Source: Adineta vaga
Lineage: Eukaryota > Animalia > Rotifera
Assembly: GCA_021613535.1 (NCBI GenBank)
Contig: CP075494.1
Coordinates: 1,364,001 to 1,428,000, forward strand
Direction of reading: 5' to 3'
Length of the DNA stretch: 64,000 nucleotides
Every line of letters begins with the position of its first letter. Positions within the stretch are counted from its first letter, which is position 1. The position numbers and the translations under genes are program-made. Below are positions 10,939 to 40,306 of the stretch, piece after piece. The notes beneath the pieces were generated by a model. It saw only the letters and a list, made by a program, of their open reading frames with translations, searched no databases and was not told where the DNA came from.

Positions 10939-13885
10939 TTAGTCATGTTCATAATCCAATCGTATTTCAGATAAACAAAAAACACCATCGAATGGAATTA
11001 TCACACATTTGTGACGTATTTTTTCTACAGGAACAAAACAAAATTCGTCAGATAATTCTACTAAAGGAAATAACTGATCCACTTTCACATGTAATGTATT
11101 AGGAATATCGACATAATGTGAAAAAGATTTTTGACTTAATTTGTACTTCTGAATGAAGGCATAGAATTGTAAATTTGTTTGAAGAAAGACAATAATATTT
11201 CCATAACCGGTAGAGTTGTGCTTTGGATCGTCGAAAGAGATAACATAACTTTGGCATTTAAACGGTTGATCATAAATGATTGTATGATATGTAATGAAGA
11301 AGTTTTTGAATCGTAGAAAGTAATTGCATGAATTTCCATCCAATTTAAAACTTGTCAAATGTTGCAAAACTAGAGAACGATACATACTAAGTCGACGATC
11401 AATTAATTTAATTTCCTAAATTATGTCTTTAGAAGGTAGAAAATTTTATCACAAATTCATATACTTACATTGACTGCTGAAAATGTTGGACTTTTTATTT
11501 TTGTTTGCATCGTTGTTTGAAGATCAATCCAATAAGTAATTTGTGCACCAAGATCTTTACTTCCATGAGCCTTTTTCTGAATAAAGCGAATGCACGATTC
11601 AAAACCGAAAGCAGATGTATGACCAAGACCACCATGACGTCTAACTTGTTGTGCAAGATGAATATGTGCATGAAGTGAAAATAATTCAATAGAAGAATCA
11701 TGTACTAAAGGTGCTGTCTTACAATAATAATGTATTATTTCTTCTGCCATGTTAATTTCATCACCAGAATTAGGTGCATGTAGCATGATAATCGCCATTG
11801 AATAAAGCAAGAAATGCGACGTCAAAAGCTTTGGAAGATGAAGCGTGACAGCAGGTACACCAACATTCAATACGAACAATCGACCGTTCTTGGCTTTCCA
11901 TTGATCGGCATGATCAATGGATTCTAAGAAAGGTACATTTAGATTATGTGGTAAATGAAGTTGACCTAATAAACTGTCAATTTCACGTAACGATGATTTA
12001 TCAACATTTTGGCACCAACGTTTGATTACACATGGAATGTGACCAAGACATACCAGATGCATATAGTCAAATACAATTTGAGAAGGATATTGAAAAATCT
12101 ATAGTACAAAAAAAACAAAGAAAATATAATTTTTTTATTGAAGAAATCGTATCGGATAAACGGCTTCATATCTTAAATGAAATATGCTAGTGACTATCTT
12201 GTTTATCATTTCATTTCCTTCTCAATATGTTCAGACATATATTCCCGTGATTTTGACCGTATATATATGTTGACATAAAAACATTTTTTGACATAATGAT
12301 CATGATGGCGTCACCTAGATTCTCATTGCTATGATTCTTATGCTATGAATCTCATTCAAAGATGTTCTTTGTGTTCGAAATGTAGCAAGAAACACAATTG
12401 TTCTTACCCGAAATAACATTGAAAAACCTTTAACTCCACGAACAGATACAATTTTTCGATGAGTAGACTTCTTCTGTGCTTCTTTCGCTGCATCTAGATA
12501 CTCAGCATGTGTTCGAGGTGCAAGATTATTATTGCTGAATGGATAAATAACCATATTGTTTTCTTTACTCCATTGACCTATAAGCAAACGTATATCTCTT
12601 CATTTATATAAAACAATTTAACTTCTTTGAGAAGAACTGAACTCCTTATTACGCAAGAACAAAGGAGTATTACTATCATTAAACATAGAAACAAATATAG
12701 AAGCAATCAAATGACACTTAAACGAACAAAGATTTTTCAAAACGTAAAAAAAAATTGAATATAACTATACATACCAGTAGTACAACATTCTGTGCATGCA
12801 GAATAACCATTAAAACTGATAGTTTTACAGAACAAAGCTTTTGCTGGTAGATCAGATACAAAATATTGTGTTCGTAAGGTAATTTGATATTCTAAACCAT
12901 TGATAAATAAAGATGTTCCATCATTGATCAACAGTTGCAGTTCTTGGATTGTTTCTTCTAGAAATACGTTTGCATCTGGTTTTTTTCGAGAAATCCATAA
13001 AGACAAAAGAACAATATTTTTTTGATAATCACGTGCCGGTGGAGGTAACTCAACAATTGACGCAAAGCAAGGCCAAAGGCTTTGTTTAGATGATTTTACA
13101 ATTGGTGCACCATCAGCATGAACAATTAAGGTAAGTCGATTAACCATTTTAGTTGATTTTTGTTGATAAAAATCTCCAAAACAAACATCTGTAGTTGGAT
13201 AAAGATCTTTTCGATTAAGAAGAATTTCGTTCCTAGTTAAAATAGATTGAAGTTGGCTGCGAATATCTAAATGAGTCAATTCCACAAGTTCATTTGATTT
13301 TAACATACGATTGGCGTTTACACATTCTTCATTGTCACATAATTTAACTCCATATGCACCTTTTTTACATTGTCTAAAACAATTTGCACATAGATATGAA
13401 GAATGTCCGCTTGATATATGATTTAAAATTTTCGTAATTCCTTTCCAGGTGGTCGGTAAACGATTTGGAGTAGGTAATAATGATTTGATAATGCGAAGTA
13501 AACTAATAGCAGTTTGTTTGTTAATATTATAATCAATCATGAATGATGTTAATCGATGTACAGCGTCCTTCGTTGTAATACTACTACCATCGAACAATCT
13601 TTCAGAGTTCTCGATCTCCACAGGTTCTTCATCAGGTAAATGGTTGTTGTCGAAATGATCATTATGATATTCCATCGTTGTTGAACGTGGTAAATCTAAA
13701 AGAACATTCATTGGTAAAGCTTCTGCTTTACCTTCAACGAGTTCATCAGCAAATAAATCATCGTTATCATCATCAGAACTAATATCTAAAGATTGGAATA
13801 ATTGATTCACCATTTCTCTACGTTGTAGACGTTGACGACGTTGCGTTTTTATTTTATTCGATCTGGTAGCTTTAAACCGGAGCAT
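10939..13885 (-). CDS. CACTA/CMC transposase, 4 exons, ~795 aa, apparently intact
   Basis: Exons 13885-12775, 12577-12408, 12098-11469, 11415-10939 with GT-AG introns join in frame (2388 nt). Motifs HADGAP..SKQSLWP, SDLPAKA..FNGYSAC, FDYMHLVCLG, HAHIHLAQQV..G..SAFGFES. Confidence 0.92.
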
Positions 13886-16606: not shown

Positions 16607-17643
16607 ATGTCTTCGCAAATCATTGCAACGCTTAGATTTGCTGGAGAGCAAGTGAACATTTTCTTGGGCATACCAGTTCTGGTCGCTGGTCTCCTCGGAG
16701 GGTTCCTCAATTTAATTGTATTTCTCACTCTTCGAACATTTCGAGAAAGTTCATCTGCATTCTATTTAATTGTCATGTCAATTGTTAACAGTGGTCGATT
16801 ACTCACTGGTCTAATGTCTTATATTCTGATCAATGGATATGCAATCGATTGGACTACAACTTCATTAGCCTACTGTAAAATCCGATATTTCTTGGTTCTA
16901 ACATTTGCACCAATATCATGCACATGTTTGTGTCTATCCACAATTGATCAATATTTCGCCACTTGTTCTCGTCCTCGGTGGCAACATTGGAGCAATATCA
17001 AATTAGCCAATCGTGTAATGATAGGATTCATTTTCATTTGGATTTTGCATTCATCTCCACATTTTTTCTTTTATAATCATGTTCAATCAGTTACAACAGG
17101 TAAAATTTCCTGCACGAGTACGAATGTGATATTTTCTCAATATCGCACTTATGGTATCAATCTCATTCTCATCGGTTTTCTACCAGTCTCGATTACAATT
17201 TCGTTTGGACTTTTCGCTTTTCGTAATGTGAAACAACTGGCTCATCGGGCGTTGCCTCTTGTTCGACGCGAATTAGATAAACAAATAACAGCTATGGTTC
17301 TTCTACAAGTTGTCTTCAATGCCTTTATGACATTACCATACCTCATTACAAGTGCTCTTGCACTAGATACGAATATTATGAGTGATCCAGTCGTAGCAGC
17401 AAAAATACAATTTTTAACTACGGTCACCATTCTCATCTACTATGCAAATTGTTCGGTAGGTAAAGAGCGATTCAATAATATTAAAAATTTTGATTTTGTA
17501 ACTATTTCTAGATTCCATTTTATCTCTATATGTGTGTATCGGAACGATTTCGTCGACAGTTCATTTATGCACTCTTCAAGATTCATCTGAACCGATGGCA
17601 ACAACCAAGAATGCCTAAGAATCAAGTGGTACCAGGATCGTAA
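16607..17643 (+). CDS. Rhodopsin-family (class A) GPCR, 2 exons
   Basis: Seven hydrophobic segments, GGFLNLIVF (TM1), YCKIRYF, STIDQY (DRY-like). Intron 17456-17511. Exon 2 IPFYLYMCVSERFRRQF...PGS* ends at 17643. AATAAA at ~17765. Confidence 0.92.
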
Positions 17644-18034
17644 CGAACAACCGGCTGACAATGATTGTGAACATTACTCTATGTTTACTCTTATTTGATC
17701 AATACGCATATATTCGAACTATTTAATAATTTTTATTATTACTCATTTCTGTCGTTTTTGTCACAATAAAATGTCTTCATCGCAGTTCAGTTTGAGGGTG
17801 TGAGTGTGAGTTAAGCAATGATAGTCACCCACACACGTTTTCTTCACATATTGAAAAACACGGTTATTTCTCTCGTGATGTCAAGATTGATGTTGATACT
17901 TAACCGAATGTGAACCAGCAGGACACTCAGATCCTCACTTAAACGAGGCGCATTTTGCAGCGGCAAAATAACCAATTCTCGTATCGCCATTTACATTAGT
18001 ATACTTACTACCGTTGGTGTATGTGCAATGCATC

Positions 18035-18089
18035 TTGAGGGTGTGGGTGGGTGAAGATAATGAAAGAAAACAACCACATCCACACCCTC
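18035..18089. repeat. Inverted telomere-like hexamer element (copy left of the fusion gene)
   Basis: TTGAGGG TGTGGG TGGG TG - AT-rich spacer - CCACAT CCACAC CCTC. Confidence 0.75.
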
Positions 18090-18297
18090 CATAGAAATCT
18101 GTGCATTGTATTAAATCAATTTTTTCAACAATTTGATATAATAAAAGATGTTGCAATCATATAAGTTATCATTGTATTACTAAAATGAACTATGTCGATC
18201 AGAAAAGATAATTAAAACGTTTAGGAAATAAAAATATGAAAAAAAGTTTCTTTTTCGATAGTGTCATATTGATAAAATAATAATTTTAACGAATAAG

Positions 18298-21219
18298 TTA
18301 ATTAGCAATTGGAAAAGCTATATAATTAGCTTTGTCAAATCGTATTAAAGTGTAATTTATATCATCAAAAAAGTTTTAATTTCACCAAATAAACTTGTTT
18401 TATTATAAAATAATAATGTTGATGCATTATTAAGAATTTCAATATATATGATTGGATTAAATGCATTTATAGTTTTAATCATTCCTTGTAAAGCTATTAA
18501 TTCATGACATTCACAATCAATTTTAATAATACTTATTCGTTTTTCAAGATTAAACAATGTATCAAATGATACACATTCAATTTCTTTGATATTAGCAGAA
18601 GAAGAATCTGATAAATCATCAATTTTAACGTACTAATTGTATCATTATCAACAATATGAGAAGATTCACCGTCATCATATAATAAACTAGTTTTATTTGT
18701 ATTGGAAACTGCATATTTATAAGTAAAAATATTTCCTGTTATATGATAATATAATTTGATGTTTTTTCTTAAATATTTAAATATAGTATCTGATGGTTCA
18801 AAACATATGATTTCAGCAGTTTTATTTGATCTCTTTAATTCATTAGATAATAATATAGAAAATATTCCAACATTTGATCCAATATCAAGTATAACATCAC
18901 CATTTATTGTACGCATAACAATATCATTAATTAAACAACATAAATTTTGATTTTTATGATAAATAAGTTCTTTATAAACTACTCATTGTTTCATAAGACT
19001 TTGAGGTTATATATAATAAAATGTATATAATCGATTATCACAAGATTGTATTTCAATTAGATTTGAATTCTTCTTATTATAATAAAAATGACGAAGAGTA
19101 ATACATGATAAACCTAATAAAAAATGAAATGATAAAATGAAATTATTTAATAAAACTGTTAAAAACTGAGAGAAAATGTGAAATTATTATTTTTATTTAT
19201 ATATCTTCTGGAACTTGTTTCAATAGATGATTGTAAATTAATTCTTTTATCATTTTTGTATAATTTCAATAATCTAACATCTTCTAATAGACTAACATAT
19301 TCAAATCCATGAAAATTTCCAGCTGAAAAACACATTACTTGGTCTCCATAAGGTAATTTTCTTATTTTATTAACTATAAATTCAAGTAATCTTAACCAAC
19401 AACTATTCTTTGAATCACTGAATTGAATATCAAAATAGACCATTTTATTTCGATATATATTTAAAGTATTTGTAACTTTGTATCAACATGAAGAAACATA
19501 ACATATTTGCCTTTACTTTTTGTAAATCCAAAATTCATTTGAAAAGATCTTCCTAAACTATATATTTCATAAATATAAATATTATTGAACTGTATTTTAT
19601 GTTTATATTCAATTATTTTCTTAATAGTATGATCAATACTTCCACCATCAACTATAATTATTTCCAAATGATTTAATGATTTTGCATTTGTTATGATTGA
19701 ATCTAATGTCATAACAATATTTTCTTCTTCATTTAAAGTTGGTATAATGATTGAATATTGAATATTTGTTAGATTTAATGATTCTAAATCTTCAATAGTA
19801 TCAACATCATAAATAATTTCATCTAATATTTTAAGTTGACCATTATATTTCTTGATTGAATTACAAGTTTGTTCAAAAACATTTTCTTTGTAATTTATAT
19901 TTTGAAAAATAGGTATAAAATTCGGTAAACCTAATATATAATATCCATCATCAAATGTTTTACCAATGATATAATGATTATTTTCTATTTCTTTTAAAGA
20001 ATTATAAAATAAATTTTCATTGATTGTTGGAACATCTGAAGGCATTAATATAATTCTATCAAGTAATTCCGATATATAATGCACTCTCTCTTCAAATGTT
20101 ACATCTGGTTGTTTTATAAAAAAATAAATTCTTTGAATTTATAAAACCATTATGAATGACAGTTTTCATGTAATATTCATCATTAACACCAGTATAGTTT
20201 ATTATTATATAGATATTGTTTGAAGAATTTTATTTAATGAATATATATGAAATTCAACAGCAAGTTCATTTCCTATTGATTTTGCTAATCTTGTTTTAGT
20301 TTTTCCAGGTTCAGGATATCGAGTAAATAATACAATATTATTTGAATAAATACGTATAACTGAATTATTTGTAATATCAAATAGAAATGTTTCATTGATT
20401 TGAGTTGTTTTTTTCAATATAAAAATGTCACCTTTATTGTCAATTGATTTACAAAAATCAATTGTTAATTCATTATCGATCTTACATATATTAATAGCTT
20501 CTACTTTTGCTAAAATATCCTTGTTATTTTCAATAATTTTTCTCATCAATTTTTCTTCATTGTTTTGAATATTTATTGTTTTAATTGAATATAAGTATTG
20601 ATTGACATTGCCATTTAATATAAAAGTTTCATTATCAGATTGACATAGTTTATTAACAATTCTATCTATTAATAATTCATCTTTTACAAAAAGAATTCGA
20701 TATATATGAAGTAACATTATGTAATAATTGTATATCATATAAATCCAAATCAATAATGAACCAAATATACTATGCATATGAATAGAATGTAATGAATGTG
20801 AATGATATTTAACTGCTTCAAGTAGATATAAACCTATTGGTAATATAAAACTTTTAATTGTTGATAGATTCGTTGATTTTAGTTCATATTTCGATACTAG
20901 TTTCATGAAATTAATCATAAAATTACATAATAAATATAACACAGCAAATGAAATGTTAATTATATTATGATGTACATATATTCCAAGCATCGTAATTTCA
21001 CGTATTTTATTCGAAATTATATGTAATATATCACCAAACTTTGATTCAACACATAGTTTTTTTTGCTAAATATCCATCAAGAGTATCCAGTAAGAGCGAT
21101 AAAATTAAGTATGGCGTATAATAGAATTGTTCATCATGTATTTTACTTAACAATATCGCATTACATATCAATCCTGTGATCGTTATTAAATTCACGAATA
21201 AAAATAAAATAATATCCAT
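18298..21219 (-). pseudogene. Intronless four-domain fusion: CDP-alcohol phosphatidyltransferase + TIGR04282/DUF2064 glycosyltransferase + TIGR04283 GT2 glycosyltransferase + FkbM-family methyltransferase (~970 codons, multiple lesions)
   Basis: From ATG 21219: VNLIT...LDTLDGYLAKK/LCVESKFGDILH (CDP-AP motif). IVLFTRYPEPGKTKTRLAKSIG, SDVP, IIGKTFDDGYYILG, YDVDTIEDL (TIGR04282). SIIIPTLNEEENI, IIIVDGGSIDHT, GRSFQMNFG, MFLHVDT, LPYGDQ, LLED, TSSRRY (TIGR04283). ILDIGSNVG, CFEPS, IKIDCECHE..LQG...PIIYIE (FkbM). About 7 frameshifts and 2 in-frame stops. Confidence 0.85.
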
Positions 21220-21368
21220 ATTATTTTTTTACGTAGCAACGAATAAACTTTCTTAAAGACCCAAAAATCTCTAGAACAATGTAGCAGGCATATAAGCAAC
21301 AATTCTTTAGTAAATATATTACCAGTAAGTAGTTGAATACGAGCTTAAGAAGAAATAGGTATCACAAC

Positions 21369-21929
21369 TGGGTGTGGGTGGGGGGTAACCGTGTGGGTGA
21401 AATTTATCTCAGCACACCCACCCACACCCGAACCCACACCCCACACCCACCCACACCCACCCTTCTAGTGTGCTAGTTCGATACTTTTTGAGAAGCGGAT
21501 TTCACACTTGTACAGGATGTCTCATCTCGAAGACGTTCTGTGGTAGCAGGTGCTGCCAGTGAGTGTGAATGTTGGTGAAAGTGAGATATGGATACATCGT
21601 CCATCTCATCCACACCCACACCCACACCCTAAAATAAGTGATGCTCTACGTACTGTTTCCAAATTTCCAAATAATTATACTAAATTTCCGAGTTAATTGT
21701 TAGAGTTTAGTAGTTTACTTGAGCAAGAGCAATTTTGTTTAATATACTAGGTCTCAAAAGTTATTATTTGCCAAATTTGATATATTGAAAAGGGAGAATT
21801 TAAAACAAATAGTGAACACCAAGAAAAAAATCAATCGAGAGTGTGGATGTGAGTGAGGGTGGGTGTCGGCGTGCGTATTTATTCTTTAAACCCACACCAA
21901 CATCCTCACACGCCCAAACCCACACTCTC
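21369..21929. repeat. Cluster of three inverted telomere-like hexamer elements (21369-21462, 21559-21630, 21837-21929)
   Basis: G-rich arm (TGGGTGTGGGTG...) followed by C-rich arm (CACACCCACCCACACCC...) in each copy. Confidence 0.75.
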
Positions 21930-23556: not shown

Positions 23557-23628
23557 TTGAGGGTGGGTGTGGGTATGGGGTATGGTCTCTCTTTCACTGC
23601 TCACTCACACCCATACCCTCACCCTCAA
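23557..23628. repeat. Inverted telomere-like hexamer element
   Basis: TTGAGGGTGGGTGTGGGTATGGG...CTCACACCCATACCCTCACCCTCAA. The right arm read on the minus strand is TTGAGGG TGAGGG TATGGG TGTGAG. Confidence 0.8.
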
Positions 23629-24230
23629 TTATCATCTTACCTGCTCGCCATCGTTCAAAGTATACAGTCAACTTACAATTAACTGAAGCTGCGAGAATTC
23701 GACATGGAATACAAGCCGAACAGTTATGTTCTTGTGCGTGAACAAAAAGTATCTGATGATACGAAATCCATTTTTTTTTGTTTTCTTAAACCAGATAAAA
23801 GGAAAACATTGATAAAGACAAGATGGTAATCAAGCATTCTTTTCAGGGAATGACATTGAAAAAACTTTTTTTCAATAGAAACTTTCATTTCATTCAAGTA
23901 TTGTTTATCATGTTCATTGAGGATGAAAAGACGTTGATTTCTATTAATTCCTCTTGCATTCTTCTAATTTTTATATTTCTTTACACGATAGGATATATTA
24001 CAAAATATGTGTCTTGTCGTGGTGACTAAGTAACGTGCTTTCATGAATTCATTTATATTACTTTCAGCAATCATCAACTTTTCACAAGAAATAATTATAG
24101 CGTTATGTGATTTCATGTAATGTGATGTACGCATCTGGATGCATATTCACATAAATATAAAAGAAAGCATGTTGACATCATTATATATTTGATATAGTTG
24201 AAAAAATTAGCCGTACATTTATTTCAAACA

Positions 24231-25211
24231 ATGAATACAACTACTATGGAAATATTTGAAGACAAGAATTTTCTTCTTCATCAAATTAAATTTTGGTTAA
24301 TACTTATTCTACAAATTCCATCAATTTTAGTTTCTCTACTCATTTTTGTTTTTCTTTTTAAACATCGTTCTATTCTATTTTCTCCACAAACTCAAATTCT
24401 TTGTATTCTATTGATGGTCAATTTCATTCAATTAACATTTAATCTTCCTCTTCCTCTTCATTTCTATCGACTTGGTTATGTTAGTCCAGCTATTCCACAG
24501 TTTTGTATGCTTTGGACATGTTTTGAATTTACATTATATGCAACGAGTGAATTTCTTGTAGCAACAATGTCTATTCAACGACATATACTCATTTTCAATA
24601 ATCATATTCTTCGTATTGGTTGGAAACATATTTTATTTTATAAATTACCATTATTATTTTGTTTAACTTATCCAATAACATTTTATACATTTGCTATTTT
24701 TTTGTATCCATGTGATGGTCGTATTCCTCATGATTATACAAATAATCTCTGTGGATTCACTGATTGTTATCTTATGTATGATAAATTTTGGGGAACATTT
24801 GATTGGACAGTGAATAATGGTTTACCAGTGGTTATCGATGTATTGGCTAATATCTTCTTAATTCTGAAAGTTGTTAAACAGAAACGTCGTCGTCAACAAA
24901 ATATATCTTGGCGACAACAAAGACATATGATAAAACAATTATTTTGTGTTTCTACTCTTTATATCATTGGATGGGGACCAAGTCTTATAGTTGGAGTTTA
25001 TCAAATCTTTGTTGATCCAACTTTTCTTTCTGAAATTCAATCAGGTTATTTACTTAGTCTTATCTATGGAATATGTCTTTTTCTTCCATGGATGTGTCTT
25101 AGTTTATTTCCTGATTTAAAAAAATGGATTAAAGTGTTATTTCGATATGGACAACATCAGAATGCAGTTGGACCAATAACACATAGAAATCGTATGGAAA
25201 CAGTTTTATGA
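24231..25211 (+). CDS. Rhodopsin-family (class A) GPCR, intronless
   Basis: 7-TM hydrophobic pattern, FCMLW (TM3 Cys), MSIQRH (DRY-like), basic ICL3 KQKRRRQQ. First ATG at 24231. Confidence 0.9.
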   Translation: MNTTTMEIFEDKNFLLHQIKFWLILILQIPSILVSLLIFVFLFKHRSILFSPQTQILCILLMVNFIQLTFNLPLPLHFYRLGYVSPAIPQFCMLWTCFEFTLYATSEFLVATMSIQRHILIFNNHILRIGWKHILFYKLPLLFCLTYPITFYTFAIFLYPCDGRIPHDYTNNLCGFTDCYLMYDKFWGTFDWTVNNGLPVVIDVLANIFLILKVVKQKRRRQQNISWRQQRHMIKQLFCVSTLYIIGWGPSLIVGVYQIFVDPTFLSEIQSGYLLSLIYGICLFLPWMCLSLFPDLKKWIKVLFRYGQHQNAVGPITHRNRMETVL

Positions 25212-25988: not shown

Positions 25989-28538
25989 ATGGATCTATCA
26001 CCACGGGAAGAAACAATTGCTACTACTTCCGTGTTTTTCTCATATAAAAGTGTTGTTATTTACAGAACAGAATTGATCATTCGTCGCATTTTATGGAGTC
26101 TACTTATAGCATGGATCTTATCGGTTTCTATCGGATTCATATTCATGTTTTTGCCAAGAAGTAATGATAATCAAAGTTATCCAATCGGTTTTACCGATGA
26201 TTCAGGTAGAGAAGCAGAATATTTTATTCTCACTTTCATATCTGATTTTCTGCTAATACACAAAATCTTAAATTTCCTTCTATTTAAATATGAAGTCAAA
26301 ATATTTTTTTAGAATAATTAAGTTTTTGAAAACATTGATACTTTTATGGTCATTTATTGTTTTCTCATGTGACAAAAATATATTCTTAGATTGAGTTCGA
26401 CCATTGACTGTTACAATTCATTTTAATGCCTGGTTGAAACTCTTTTTTATTGTGATATCATAGATTCGACCCTTTTCGATCTTTTCTATGAATCAAATAC
26501 TCAAATCAATGATTCACTCGTCGTTACAGATTTGTCAACATTGGCAGAACAGGTAATAATGTATGAGTCGGTTCATGTAAATGTCTAATATTTTCATTTC
26601 GTAGATCGCCAAAACATATAGTTCATCTCGTAATATAATTCGAGTGCACTCTGCCAGATTCGTACAAAGTTTAATTTTGACACAGCGAAAACGACAAACG
26701 TAAGTAATTTATATATAATATGTCGGCAAACAAAATTCTCGTCTTCTGTATGACGTACGTTTCTTTTAGTTCATCACTTAGTAATACTACGAGCAATAGA
26801 AGTAAACTTCTGTTTCTTATCGAACTCGAAGTGAAATATCCACCTACATGTGGTGATATCAAAGCGTGTAATGATCATTTCATTACTGTTATTCACAGAA
26901 CAATTCAATCAGGCCCATTGGAAGTTTCTTTTCGCGTAACCTTTACTAACAGTATCACATTAAATGTTGAACTTGTATTTGAATCGCTTAATCGATCATA
27001 TGCGTCAAACGCAACAACAACGACAACAACTACCGGTCAGTCATATGCTAGGTGTTTTGCACTGTTTTTTGTAGTTTCTGAAGAATGATTACATCGAATC
27101 AGAAATCAACAGATGAGATAAGAGATCAGTTGTTTAGGAGCCATTAGTGAAACAAGAGACAATCCAATGCATTTGATGGCGCGTTATTTCTTTCTACTTA
27201 TGCACTAGATTTAGTGGACACTGACAATAGTATTGTAAATGACATTTTCACAACGAAGTCAATACGAAAAATGATAGATGTGCATCAAATGAGAGCATGC
27301 GTACAGAAGTCAGATGATTAGAGTAGGTTGTAAATTTGTTGAGATATTACATATGAATATGGAGAGAATTTGAGAGAAGTATTTTAATACACCTTGTCGA
27401 ATATATAAGATTATCGACAATAAATTTGTATATAATTCTGTTGTGTATTTTATTTCTACTTGTTCTCAAATCGCTTTAAATAAAAAATCTTTTGCATTTA
27501 ACAGCATGCACTTCACTCTTCCCCAATCAAATAACTTACACGACTGGTACACGTCCCCAGGCAATAGTAGTTACAGACGTGAATAATGACAATACACCTG
27601 ATATTATTGTTACAAACTACGGTTCGAGCAATGTCGGTGTTCTTTTCAATGCAGGCAATGGGACGTTTCTTTCTCAAACTACTTACTCTATTAGTAGTTA
27701 TTCATATTCATTAGCTGTGAGCGACGTGAATAATGACAATAAACCAGATATTGTTGTCGCAAACTCTGGTTTGAGCACCATTGGCGTTCTTCTTAATATG
27801 GGCAATGGAACATTTTTTTCCCAAACAACTTACTCAGTCGGTAGCGGTCCATATCCAGTAGCCGTAAGAGATGTAAATGGTGACAAAACACCCGATATAG
27901 TTGTTGCATGTACTAATGTTCAAAGTGTCAGCGTTCTTTTCAACATTGGAAATGGAACATTTATTAATCACAGTTCTTATTTGGTTGGTTTTAATCCACC
28001 CTCAGTAGCGATAAGTGATGTAAATGGTGACAACAATCTGGATATTGTCGTTGCCAACTATAATTCACACAATATTGGTGTGCTTCTGAATGCAGGCAAT
28101 GGGACATTTCTTTCTCAAGTAACTTACGCAAGTGGTAACAATCCAAATTCAGTAACAGTAAACGATGTGAATGGTGACAGCAAACCTGATATGATCATTG
28201 CGGTTTATGGTACGAATAATGTCGGTGTTCGTCTTAATGCAGGCAATGGTACATTTCTTTCTCAAACTAATTACTTAAGTGGTATCGGTCCATATTCAGT
28301 ACAAGTAGCAGATGTTAATAAAGACAACATACTCGACATTGTTGTCGTAAACAGGGATTCTAATAACGTTGGTGTTTTTCTTAACAATGGCAATGGAACA
28401 TTTCTTCCTCAGACAACTTACGCAGTTGGTATCAAACCATATTCAGTTGGCGTAAGTGATGTAAATGGTGACAATAAATCAGATCTAGTTGTAACAAATG
28501 GTGATTCGAACAACGTTGGTGTTCTCTTACAATGTTAA
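25989..28538 (+). CDS. Membrane-anchored FG-GAP/VCBS repeat (beta-propeller) protein, multi-exon
   Basis: N-terminal TM exon (25989-~26205), short internal exons, Thr-run exon ending ACC G|GTCAG (~27035), terminal exon 27505-28538 with seven DVNxDxxxDIVVxN..NVGVLLNxGNGTF repeats. Confidence 0.85.
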
Positions 28539-29140: not shown

Positions 29141-32100
29141 TCAGCAACAGTCACATGTATTTTGTAAAATGTATAATCTACCAGATGATGCATCGCCAAT
29201 AGCAAAATCTAATTTACTGTCACCATTAAAATCGGCTACTACAATCGACATTAGACCGCTTTTTCTTCCAAACGAAAATGTGATCTGGTTCAGAAAACTT
29301 CCGTTATCAATGCCAATTAGTATACCAATGTTATGCATATGCTGGTTCACTACAATAATATCTGGTCGACCATCATTATTCATGTCGCCAACAGCCACGG
29401 ATACTGGATGACTGGAACCGCCTGTGTAATATACTGCTTGCTCTTGAAAGGTTCCATCACCATTTCCGAGAATAACTCCGACTTCATTGGTGCCTGAATT
29501 TGCTACAACGAGATCCAATCGATGGTCATAGTTAAGATCATTTGCAACAATCGATGCGGGTTCACTAAACTGTCCTGTTGACATTATTATCGGTGCACTG
29601 AATGTAGCATCACCATTGCCAAGAATCACGCATACTCTCTCATCATTGGGAAGAACACCAGCGACATCTAACTTTCCATCACCATTAAAATCACCAGTAA
29701 CAAGATACGCTTCATTTCCGATCCAAGTCATTACTTTTATTGTAAAAGTTCCATTACCTTTACCTTCAAGAATGTATAGACTCTTGTCATTAGTGAAGCT
29801 GACAACCATATCTGGTATATTATCTTGATTAAAATCCCCAATAATAATGGATTCTGCACTAGAATATAATTCAATACGAAATGCCACCAGTTGACTAAAG
29901 TGTCCGTTGCCATTGTTGAGTAATATATCTATGCTTTTCCTGTTACTGTTGGCGACAGCAACATCTATGTAGTCGTCACGATTAAAATCCCCCAGAGCAA
30001 GTACGGCTAGTTCGTATTTTGATCCAACAGAAAATATTACTTGTGATTGAAAAGTTCCGTCGCCGTTGCCTAGTAAGATATTAATATGCCCAGTGGGTCC
30101 ATTTTTGACAGCAAGATCTAGGTGACCATCACCATTAAGATCGTCGATTGCTATTGATGGCGATGCGAAATCAAAACTATTATTATAGGAGCTGACTTCT
30201 TGAAAAGATAATTGACATGGTGGCACTAACAAAAAAACACAGAACTGTTTCAAAGAATATAGTACGCGAAACACGTATATTGTTTGTTTCCTTCTATATG
30301 AAGCTCAAAATCAGTGAGATCGTACCTTTCTTATTAGCACTTCACGGTCTCTCCAGAACTAAGGATATATCAATGGAGATAAAAATTTGCTTCGAACATC
30401 TTGCCCATACAGTAAATGAGGTCAAAGACAATTCTTGTTCAAATGCGTAGAGATTTATCTATGTAGAGAATAAGCCGAGAGAGTATTTTCTCGAAGAAGA
30501 TGGATATTTTATCTGCATGTATGACGGTCGAGAAAGAAGATCATCCAGTGGGGTTTCTTTCCTCTACTATATGTGATGAAAAAGTTTACTACCACTAGTC
30601 TCTAAAAAATATCTCCAAACACCGCATGAAATTGGTTTAGTCCTAATGTCTCTCTAGGAAATGAACTGTTGCACTTGTTCTAATTTAAACCTGAACTCAC
30701 TCATAATTTTCATATCGAATGTATATTAGAGTACACATAACCACCGCCCTAGTCAATGTAAGTCGATAGCAAGTAGAACTTATCACAGCATAGAAGTTTA
30801 AATTAATCCGAGATATTTAGAGAACTATGTATACTCTCACACGTACTCCTATGTATTTTCTGCAAGTAGTCTCACACATACCACAGTACGAACACTCATG
30901 AAAGTGCTCATATTCCTCTTCCACATAGAAATGATGTATCGAAAAAGTTTTCAGAACATTTCTGTTGCTCATAACAGAAATCGAGTGAAGTATGTATATT
31001 GAAGATCTGCTAAACTCGTGAAAGAACTAAGAATGCAAACAATGTGTAATACTTCTTAATAAAGATGAAACGTAATTGTCCAACCATACCTCAATATTGA
31101 ACATATTTAGGTCTCAATACTAAGACCTGGAGCAATATATTCTACGTGGCTTCAAATAATATCGACGCTGATCATTCCTGACATTATATTATAGCCTTCC
31201 TTTCTCCACAGTTTACAAACCTACTCCGAAAATTTTCAACGCTCGGTCATTTTCGAAACTTCGATGGCTTCTAAAGTAAGGTTTTGTCTGGTTCTCTTAC
31301 TGCTGCCGTTACTTTTCAAAGTAAGCTAGTCAATCAAATCTTATAAGACAGACAAAGTGAGTTTTTCGTTTTATCATTGAACGAGTTAAAATAGAACTAC
31401 TGGCACCATAGTGCAAGAGATGCGGAGAACAGTCCTGACCTGTTGAAACGAGAGATAACGTTGTCGTTGTTGTTGAACCAATGCCATTAGCTGCAATTGT
31501 ACTGGTTGAAGGAACTATGGAACAAAAAGTATTTGACATATGATTTTGTGAGATGAATAGTAGAGTGAAGACTATCACATATTAGTCATATAAAATGCTT
31601 AGTGCTTCATTTATTCTTTAGAGTTTATCTTCTTTTTTAAGGCATATCAAACCTACCGATACGATAACTGACTTATTGCAAAGGAATATATTGATATGGA
31701 AGTCTTCGGATGAGTTAAGTTAAATGTAGAGTCGCTGACTCTCAAAATAGGTATTAATTTCAAAGCCTAGTTTATCACTTGACATTAGGTTCGGCTTTCC
31801 GCCAATTTTATACTACAAAGATGCTCGAAAAAAAATCAAAGTGACTAATATCTAATCAGCATACAAGAGCGATCACTTAAGTACCAAAAATGAAACAAAG
31901 AAGAACATACTCGTGTGCGTAGCGTCAATCTGTCCCTGTCGACTAAGATAAGCGGATGTTCCAATAAAACCTAAACCACCAAACACAAATACCAAAAAAG
32001 CAAAGAACAAGGTTCGTAGCAGTGCCAAACAAAGCATTGACCTAAGAACAAAAACATCTAAATTTTTGTTTCAATAAAAACAAGAATGACATACTTATGT

Positions 32101-40244: not shown

Positions 40245-40306
40245 TGAGGATGTGGGTGTGGATGTACAATGCATATAATACTCACATTTACACCCACACC
40301 CTCAAG
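40245..40306. repeat. Inverted telomere-like hexamer element abutting a truncated transposase
   Basis: TGAGGA TGTGGG TGTGGA TGTA - spacer - CTCACATTTACACCCACACCCTCAAG. Confidence 0.8.

Follow-up and report, generated by a model that had tools for sequence, protein, structure and literature searches.

Proteins that fuse a TIGR04282-like domain to a TIGR04283-like domain are common in bacteria, often as a two-domain protein of 430-460 aa, and a longer form with DUF2064, family-2 glycosyltransferase (GT2) and FkbM domains already exists there as an annotated, uncharacterised protein, e.g. cce_2404. GT2 is a generic sugar-transfer family and FkbM a generic O-methyl-transfer family; the archaeal IPCT/DIPPS, a bifunctional protein, unites a nucleotidyltransferase with a CDP-alcohol phosphotransferase. 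Here we describe a related locus in Adineta vaga, a rotifer of the bdelloid group. It lies at 18298-21219, on the minus strand, of a stretch of 64,000 nucleotides of chromosome 5 (1.364-1.428 Mb; hereafter the window, whose positions are used throughout) and displays, in collinear order, a CDP-alcohol phosphotransferase-like (CDP-AP-like), a TIGR04282/DUF2064-like, a TIGR04283-like GT2 and an FkbM domain, interrupted by seven frameshifts and two stops. We consider it a bacterial-type gene, gained by horizontal transfer and since turned into a decaying pseudogene, whose ancestor encoded a four-domain polypeptide of about 970 aa, and we put the probability of this reading at roughly 0.8.

The six-chromosome assembly of A. 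vaga has been published, with 2,679 candidates for horizontal gene transfer (8.3% of genes), a subtelomeric enrichment of foreign genes, and (TGTGGG)n as the telomeric repeat (PMC8494291). The genome assembly searched here comprises 100.8 Mb in six contigs.

Results

The reading path was set by three-frame translation and by tblastn of two intact bacterial homologues (summed E 1e-84 and 3e-76). For frames, hidden Markov model (HMM) searches and trees we used read-throughs with an X at each break, together with haplotypes rebuilt from contig differences in two other samples, X3 and X7. An earlier reading, made from the sequence alone, had proposed six collinear pieces joined across about seven frameshifts and two stops, and open reading frames (ORFs), three-frame translation and tblastn confirmed this in every detail; the six minus-strand ORFs are 21219-21046, 20990-20205, 20084-19461, 19443-19159, 18916-18533 and 18557-18357. 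The longest stop-free run on the minus strand has 286 codons and spans, in the window, the remainder of the CDP-AP domain, the linker and the start of the TIGR04282 domain. Since 1000 shuffles of the island at its 21% GC never exceeded 128 codons, this reading frame is not due to chance.

Two gene models are annotated at the locus, P0151 of 233 aa and P0001 of 447 aa (UJR19138.1, 'hypothetical protein I4U23_022268 [Adineta vaga]'). Among the families named by the sequence-only reading, FkbM was matched above its cut-offs, and PF01066, TIGR04282 and TIGR04283 were matched below theirs. PF05050 scored 28.4 bits on the last ORF (cut-off 22.7) and TIGR01444 66.3 bits on P0001 (cut-off 37.7), with 33.1 and 26.2 bits on the two separate FkbM ORFs. 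The first part of TIGR04282 lies in the last part of the 261-aa ORF 20990-20205 (positions 1-41, 34.6 bits); the single 207-aa ORF 20084-19461 holds both its positions 96-189 (58.6 bits) and TIGR04283 positions 2-86 (69 bits), and TIGR04283 positions 106-192 lie in the 94-aa ORF 19443-19159 (42.6 bits). The DUF2064-like domain also matches the CofC and NTP_transf_3 models, and the one DUF2064 relative with a solved structure, 3CGX from structural genomics, is labelled 'putative nucleotide-diphospho-sugar transferase'.

When the 207-aa ORF was used in an exhaustive HMMER search, just three proteins fell below E 1e-30, among them the model annotated at the locus itself. The remaining two (687 and 684 aa) have the domain order of the island, TIGR04282-like, then TIGR04283-like, then FkbM, and sit on bacterial metagenome contigs with ClpS, GspH, AddB, RecG and glutathione synthetase as neighbours. 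In tblastn these proteins cover the island in order over residues 9-681, with 30-41% identity, and both stops fall within sequence conserved among the bacterial homologues. Further searches yielded 17 clusters of 683-719 aa with PF09837, PF00535 and PF05050, most of them from Crocosphaera/Cyanothece (among these cce_2404 of C. subtropica ATCC 51142, CY0110_09882, proteins annotated as 'FkbM family methyltransferase' or 'DUF2064 domain-containing protein', as well as 'Unicellular cyanobacterium SU3') plus one further lineage. In two trees the rotifer copy and the 17 bacterial three-domain proteins formed a clade with a long stem (Shimodaira-Hasegawa-like approximate likelihood ratio test, SH-aLRT, 100), within which the rotifer copy was sister to all 17 (support 95); its exact position should be read with some caution, since the rotifer branch is long and deviant in composition. 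Domain order, full-length collinearity and monophyly place the rotifer copy in the cce_2404-type DUF2064-GT2-FkbM subfamily. No closer relatives were found in protein collections, metagenome contigs (one weak GT2 match) or viral contigs (0 matches).

Three observations identify the island as horizontally transferred, namely its non-metazoan affinity, its linkage to host genes in independent data and its alien composition. Animal ORFs for rhodopsin-type G-protein-coupled receptors (GPCRs) bracket it at 16607-17590 and 24198-25211, and a genome-wide search showed it to be single copy, with no second copy. Its GC content is 21% as against ~33% in the surroundings, with a GC content at third codon positions of ~0.10, sharp borders and a base composition that is even across all segments. 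The genes of the known carriers have a GC content of 29-42%.

Sequencing runs from four studies contain the stretch, and we compared three of these (2013, 2015 and 2022), of which X1 is the 2013 read set. The X1 contigs cover 18261-21300 with 0-1 differences and zero indels at any break; as they agree with the window at every break, where the sequence-only reading had called for a check against reads, the lesions are not errors of this assembly. The contigs of all three compared runs extend into the telomere-like flank. Neither stop is present in X3 and X7, which have CAA at 19009 and TTA at 18984. X3 further has 16 extra nt behind 20211 and is without one base at 20118, and its frame runs for 539 codons from the remainder of the CDP-AP domain into the GT2 domain, crossing the CDP-AP/linker/DUF2064 junction. 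X7 has the same 16 extra nt and 25 more behind 19471, is without two bases at 18630, and shows a 16-nt deletion of its own at 20559; its frames comprise 334 codons (DUF2064 C-terminus and whole GT2) and 274 stop-free codons (GT2 tail and FkbM). Translated, the extra 16 and 25 nt give NIKNINI and LPYHFD, whose aligned counterparts in the bacterial proteins are VKNVNIV and LPEHWD, and because they match conserved bacterial residues the longer state is ancestral and that of the window derived. That the domains once formed a single coding line, as had been proposed, is borne out by the 286-, 539- and 274-codon frames.

Three frameshifts (A8, 19176-19171 and T6) are present in all samples. Substitutions among the samples comprise 28 non-synonymous changes, the two stop changes included, and 3 synonymous ones, the random expectation being 19.5% synonymous. 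RNA-labelled runs of the organism contained ~0 of the sampled island words and gave no transcript contigs. With the lesions confirmed in contigs and the substitutions free of purifying selection, the locus is a pseudogene that was broken before the sampled lineages split and is still eroding.

Some further variation was seen in the reads. In X1 and X3 one contig tracks the island to 20950, from where it jumps to the telomere-like tract 21371-21400, one base changed, and the depth over 21004-21300 is ~0.6-0.7 of that elsewhere; the probable cause is a second haplotype from which ~420 bp (20951-21370), with the start codon and the CDP-AP motif, have been deleted. Heterozygous bubbles at 19090-19228 and 20013-20122, with about half the depth for each allele, keep the same two alleles in all three samples; one of them has 6 substitutions and is 12 nt shorter, and the other has 3 substitutions. 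In run X12, which carries another organism label, 151-nt contigs at a depth of 2-3 match 19580-19932 and 20694-20844 with at most 2 differences, probably from trace rotifer DNA in that sample.

The assignment of the N-terminal domain to the CDP-AP family is significant but weak. On the 57-codon ORF 21219-21046, NF040950 gave E 4e-4 and PF01066 E 0.003 (18.4 bits, under the Pfam cut-off of 22), and no PF01066/Pfam match was obtained on the 285-aa frame that follows. A custom HMM built from nine CDP-AP proteins gave 25 bits for the N-terminal piece alone (21058..21219) and, on the X read-through, matched positions 16-116 across the break with 27.6 bits, the best of 300 shuffles reaching 4.3. In the ESM Atlas the top matches of the piece after A8 were all CDP-AP clusters (score 0.90, 184 shared features). 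Read across the A8 shift, the motif is D-T-L-D-G-Y-L-A-K ... G-D-I-L-H-I-I-S-N, which departs from the signature D1-x2-D2-G-x2-A-R-x8-G-x3-D3-x3-D4 by R->K, D3->H and D4->N. The sequence-only reading had already noted the last two Asp as H/N and taken the copy for probably dead; motif, contigs and substitutions all agree with this. For the N-terminal piece a word-indexed search gave only the locus's own model and a PDB sequence search gave no match, and for the linker an ESM Atlas search gave nothing usable. A 509-codon stop-free ORF with a CDP-AP domain (48 bits) on chromosome 6, 1314403-1315932, was tried as a relative and rejected, its sequence being unrelated to the island N-terminus.

The claim that the architecture is undescribed therefore has to be divided: the addition of CDP-AP to the three-domain module is found in no relative, and the four-domain architecture is not seen elsewhere, whereas DUF2064, GT2 and FkbM are annotated together in bacteria. 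Likewise, the three domains that might have proved to be separate genes in intact homologues are fused in all 17 clusters, and PF01066 is found in 0 of these 17 (683-719 aa). It could thus be hypothesized that the island is the remnant of an operon, in which a donor CDP-AP gene adjoined a separate three-domain gene and the two came into one frame through loss of a stop and the intergenic sequence during or after transfer. The missing CDP-AP relatives favor this, as do the 115-codon linker, for which no relatives were detected, and the bacterial TIGR04282/3 loci, with one doubtful case of a CDP-AP motif ORF within 6 kb among 82. However, the junction lies inside the 286-codon frame of the window and the 539-codon frame of X3, far longer than any shuffled run, and composition is uniform over all segments; we regard an operon remnant as possible, yet unlikely. 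The uniform composition and these two frames lead us to prefer, at odds of about two to one, a genuine polypeptide of four domains to an accident after transfer.

The sequence-only reading had considered an ancestor that made arsenosugar phospholipids the most attractive candidate: the TIGR04282/3-like domains would process the product of ArsS, and the CDP-AP domain would add the phosphatidyl group. The best NCBIfam matches of the two middle domains are indeed both families named 'arsenosugar biosynthesis glycosyltransferase', and SU3, the one carrier genome checked, has an ArsS above cut-off (on a contig other than that of the fusion) and its sole DUF2064 domain in the fusion. SU3 also has a separate canonical TIGR04283, however, and all scored members of the three-domain clade stay under the NCBIfam cut-offs, with 101-122 bits against 134 for TIGR04282 (hypothetical equivalog) and 145-170 against 182 for TIGR04283 (equivalog). 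The intact closest relatives reach 121.6, 101.2 and 121.6 bits with the former and 145.1, 163.1 and 170.2 bits with the latter, and the island pieces 34.6 + 58.6 and 69 + 42.6 bits. In the rotifer genome ArsS (TIGR04167) had no match and ArsM none above cut-off, and FkbM is not ArsM. Near cce_2404 and the other homologues there were no arsenic, radical-SAM or CDP-AP genes, one doubtful CDP-AP ORF aside, and our literature search found no experimental papers on TIGR04282 or TIGR04283. The arsenosugar reading is thus unsupported and such an ancestor improbable; as a sign of arsenolipid synthesis in the rotifer, the locus provides zero evidence.

It is more improbable still that P0151 and P0001 form a functional spliced gene pair, with the breaks as introns. 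The two models exist and P0001 is named in a public database, but the model 'introns' cut out conserved coding blocks (the GT2 C-terminus and the two-stop segment), the breaks are shifts of 1-2 nt or deletions of 16 and 25 nt whose ancestral sequence stands in frame in other samples, and both the unconstrained substitutions and the absence of island words from RNA-labelled runs argue against a working gene. An assembly artefact or bacterial contamination, i.e. homopolymer errors in an intact gene or a misjoined contaminant contig, might be suspected from the breaks in homopolymers (A8, T7, T6) and from an island GC far from that of the host, but is hardly credible for a stretch that is present in runs of four studies, whose breaks are reproduced in the three compared runs along with the continuation into the telomere-like flank, and in which homopolymer errors do not account for the two in-frame stops or the 16- and 25-nt deletions.

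Coordinates of domains, breaks and flanking features are collected in Table 1. Some 1.38 Mb separate the locus from the end of its chromosome, which measures 16.9 Mb. Degenerate TGTGGG is strongly represented in the window, with 15 near-matches to two repeat units as against 0.04 expected. More short TGTGGG tracts occur at 1815, 23562-23579, 28713, 40251-40304 and 56420, which fits a former or current subtelomeric neighbourhood. The telomere-like module was also considered as a dispersed element, and this was rejected, as elsewhere only the telomeric tract itself matches. Two long intronless ORFs with FG-GAP/VCBS-type repeats, a repeat type common in bacteria, at 27492-28538 (+) and 29141-30274 (-) are possible additional foreign genes. 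A 382-aa ORF at 12737-13885 (-), some 5 kb away from the island, matches Transposase_21 (tnp2) and DUF1258 and represents a transposon relic.

Table 1. Features of the island and its flanks (window positions; TM, transmembrane segment; SAM, S-adenosylmethionine).
Feature	Position	Strand	Evidence or remark
CDP-AP-like domain, start codon and N-terminal part (TM1-2; D-x2-D-G-x2-A-K)	21058..21219	-	PF01066, NF040950, custom HMM
A8 frameshift within CDP-AP motif	21057..21064	-	all three samples; X1/X3/X7 contigs show 0 differences over 20921-21300
Remaining CDP-AP-like membrane domain (G-x3-H-x3-N, then hydrophobic helices)	20690..21056	-	custom HMM, ESM Atlas
Linker of ~115 codons, relatives undetected	20340..20689	-	in frame with domains on both sides
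TIGR04282/DUF2064-like domain (CofC-like, GT-A fold)	19785..20339	-	NCBIfam matches, tblastn
Frameshift by 16-nt deletion, DUF2064-like domain	~20211	-	ancestral state in X3/X7
Frameshift, one extra base in T7 run, DUF2064-like domain	20124-20118	-	X3 without base at 20118
TIGR04283-like GT2 domain	19075..19754	-	NCBIfam matches, tblastn
Frameshift by 25-nt deletion, GT2 domain	~19471	-	25 nt present in X7
Frameshift, GT2 domain	19176-19171	-	common to all samples
Conserved inter-domain segment holding both stops	18896..19074	-	TAA 19009-19007, TGA 18985-18983
FkbM-type SAM methyltransferase domain	18298..18895	-	profile matches, tblastn
Frameshift, two extra bases, FkbM domain	~18631	-	X7 without two bases at 18630
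Frameshift, T6 run, FkbM domain	18372-18367	-	common to all samples
AT-rich foreign island	18200..21220	.	GC 0.20-0.23 per 200-nt bin vs 0.33-0.49 just outside
Telomere-like (TGTGGG)n-derived G-rich/C-rich inverted pairs, 3' side	17793..18088	.	two pairs: 17793/17826, 18036/18070
Telomere-like G-rich/C-rich inverted pairs, 5' side	21367..21929	.	three pairs: 21367/21414, 21560/21600, 21836/21890

Discussion

According to the reading we prefer, that of a captured and decaying bacterial-type gene, DNA from an unsampled, very AT-rich donor would have been taken up into a telomere-repeat-rich region between two GPCR genes. The ancestral protein would have consisted of a CDP-AP-like membrane domain and a linker of ~115 aa, followed by the DUF2064/TIGR04282-like, GT2/TIGR04283-like and FkbM module. 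Judging from what is known of these families, the donor protein may have been held at the membrane by its CDP-AP domain and may have worked step by step on a single small product, a lipid or a head group, with nucleotide activation or glycosyl transfer falling to the CofC-like DUF2064 domain, transfer of a phospho-alcohol to CDP-AP, sugar addition to GT2 and O-methylation to FkbM. Our best inference is that it would have been an assembly line anchored in the membrane, whose product would be a glycosylated and methylated lipid head group with a phosphodiester link. In the rotifer it has no function, because every sampled haplotype is frame-broken, two catalytic Asp are lost, substitutions are unselected and no transcript contigs were found. 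A bolder version, which we consider doubtful, holds that the island is the only known trace of a single-polypeptide pathway of four domains, derived from a microbe of extreme AT-richness that is so far unsampled, for a phosphodiester-linked, glycosylated and O-methylated head group, possibly an arsenosugar phospholipid, of which the Crocosphaera proteins would be the soluble core.

Several points weigh against our reading. The donor is missing from the sampled organisms, and its AT content was probably far above that of the known carriers. The CDP-AP assignment relies on weak scores with curated models (18.4 bits for a cut-off of 22), a PF01066 scan of the rotifer's own genome did not list the locus, and, as no relative possesses a CDP-AP domain, a secondary fusion is possible. 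X3 and X7 are tied to A. vaga by the shared organism label only, and the evidence on lesions comes from assembled contigs, which drop rare variants, rather than from raw reads. Transcriptional silence has a weak basis in the absence of words from a few RNA-labelled runs, and the proposed chemistry would follow from family names only.

For rotifer biology, the island adds another failed case to the captured foreign genes and is as such an ordinary kind of object for A. vaga; the adjoining telomere-like repeats fit capture near chromosome ends. It is a clean and datable example, in that one locus in three samples displays differing subsets of deletions, frameshifts and stops, which documents neutral erosion of a transferred gene. 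What makes it modestly unusual is an architecture of four domains not seen elsewhere, combined with polymorphism lesion by lesion. For enzymology, it points to the uncharacterised, conserved three-domain protein of the cce_2404 type in the marine nitrogen-fixing cyanobacterium Crocosphaera, and the extra CDP-AP domain hints at a membrane- or phospholipid-linked product of that protein.

Compared with known systems, the island comes closest to the cce_2404-type proteins, with which it shares the same three domains in the same order, including a conserved inter-domain segment and C-terminal tail. It differs from them by ~330 extra N-terminal codons (CDP-AP-like domain and linker), by its GC content (21% vs 29-42%) and by being broken, and it is sister to their clade rather than nested in it. 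TIGR04282 and TIGR04283, formerly rSAM/selenodomain-associated transferases 1 and 2, are the best families for its middle domains; the three-domain clade nevertheless stands apart from the canonical members by scores under the cut-offs, by a separate long branch (1.45-1.81 substitutions per site) and by the added FkbM domain, and the rotifer copy by its CDP-AP domain as well. With the archaeal IPCT/DIPPS it has in common that a soluble domain of the GT-A/NTP-transferase-like kind is joined to a membrane domain of the CDP-AP kind, a likeness which suggests that one protein both activates and transfers a phospho-alcohol; in the rotifer copy, however, the domains come in the opposite order, two catalytic Asp are absent and no sequence relationship beyond the families is detectable. 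Finally, like the foreign genes and pseudogenes described from bdelloids (PMC8494291), the island is a non-metazoan, intronless and compositionally alien gene that lies between animal genes with short telomere-like flanks. From other bdelloid foreign pseudogenes it does not differ in kind, and its decay can be traced lesion by lesion across samples.

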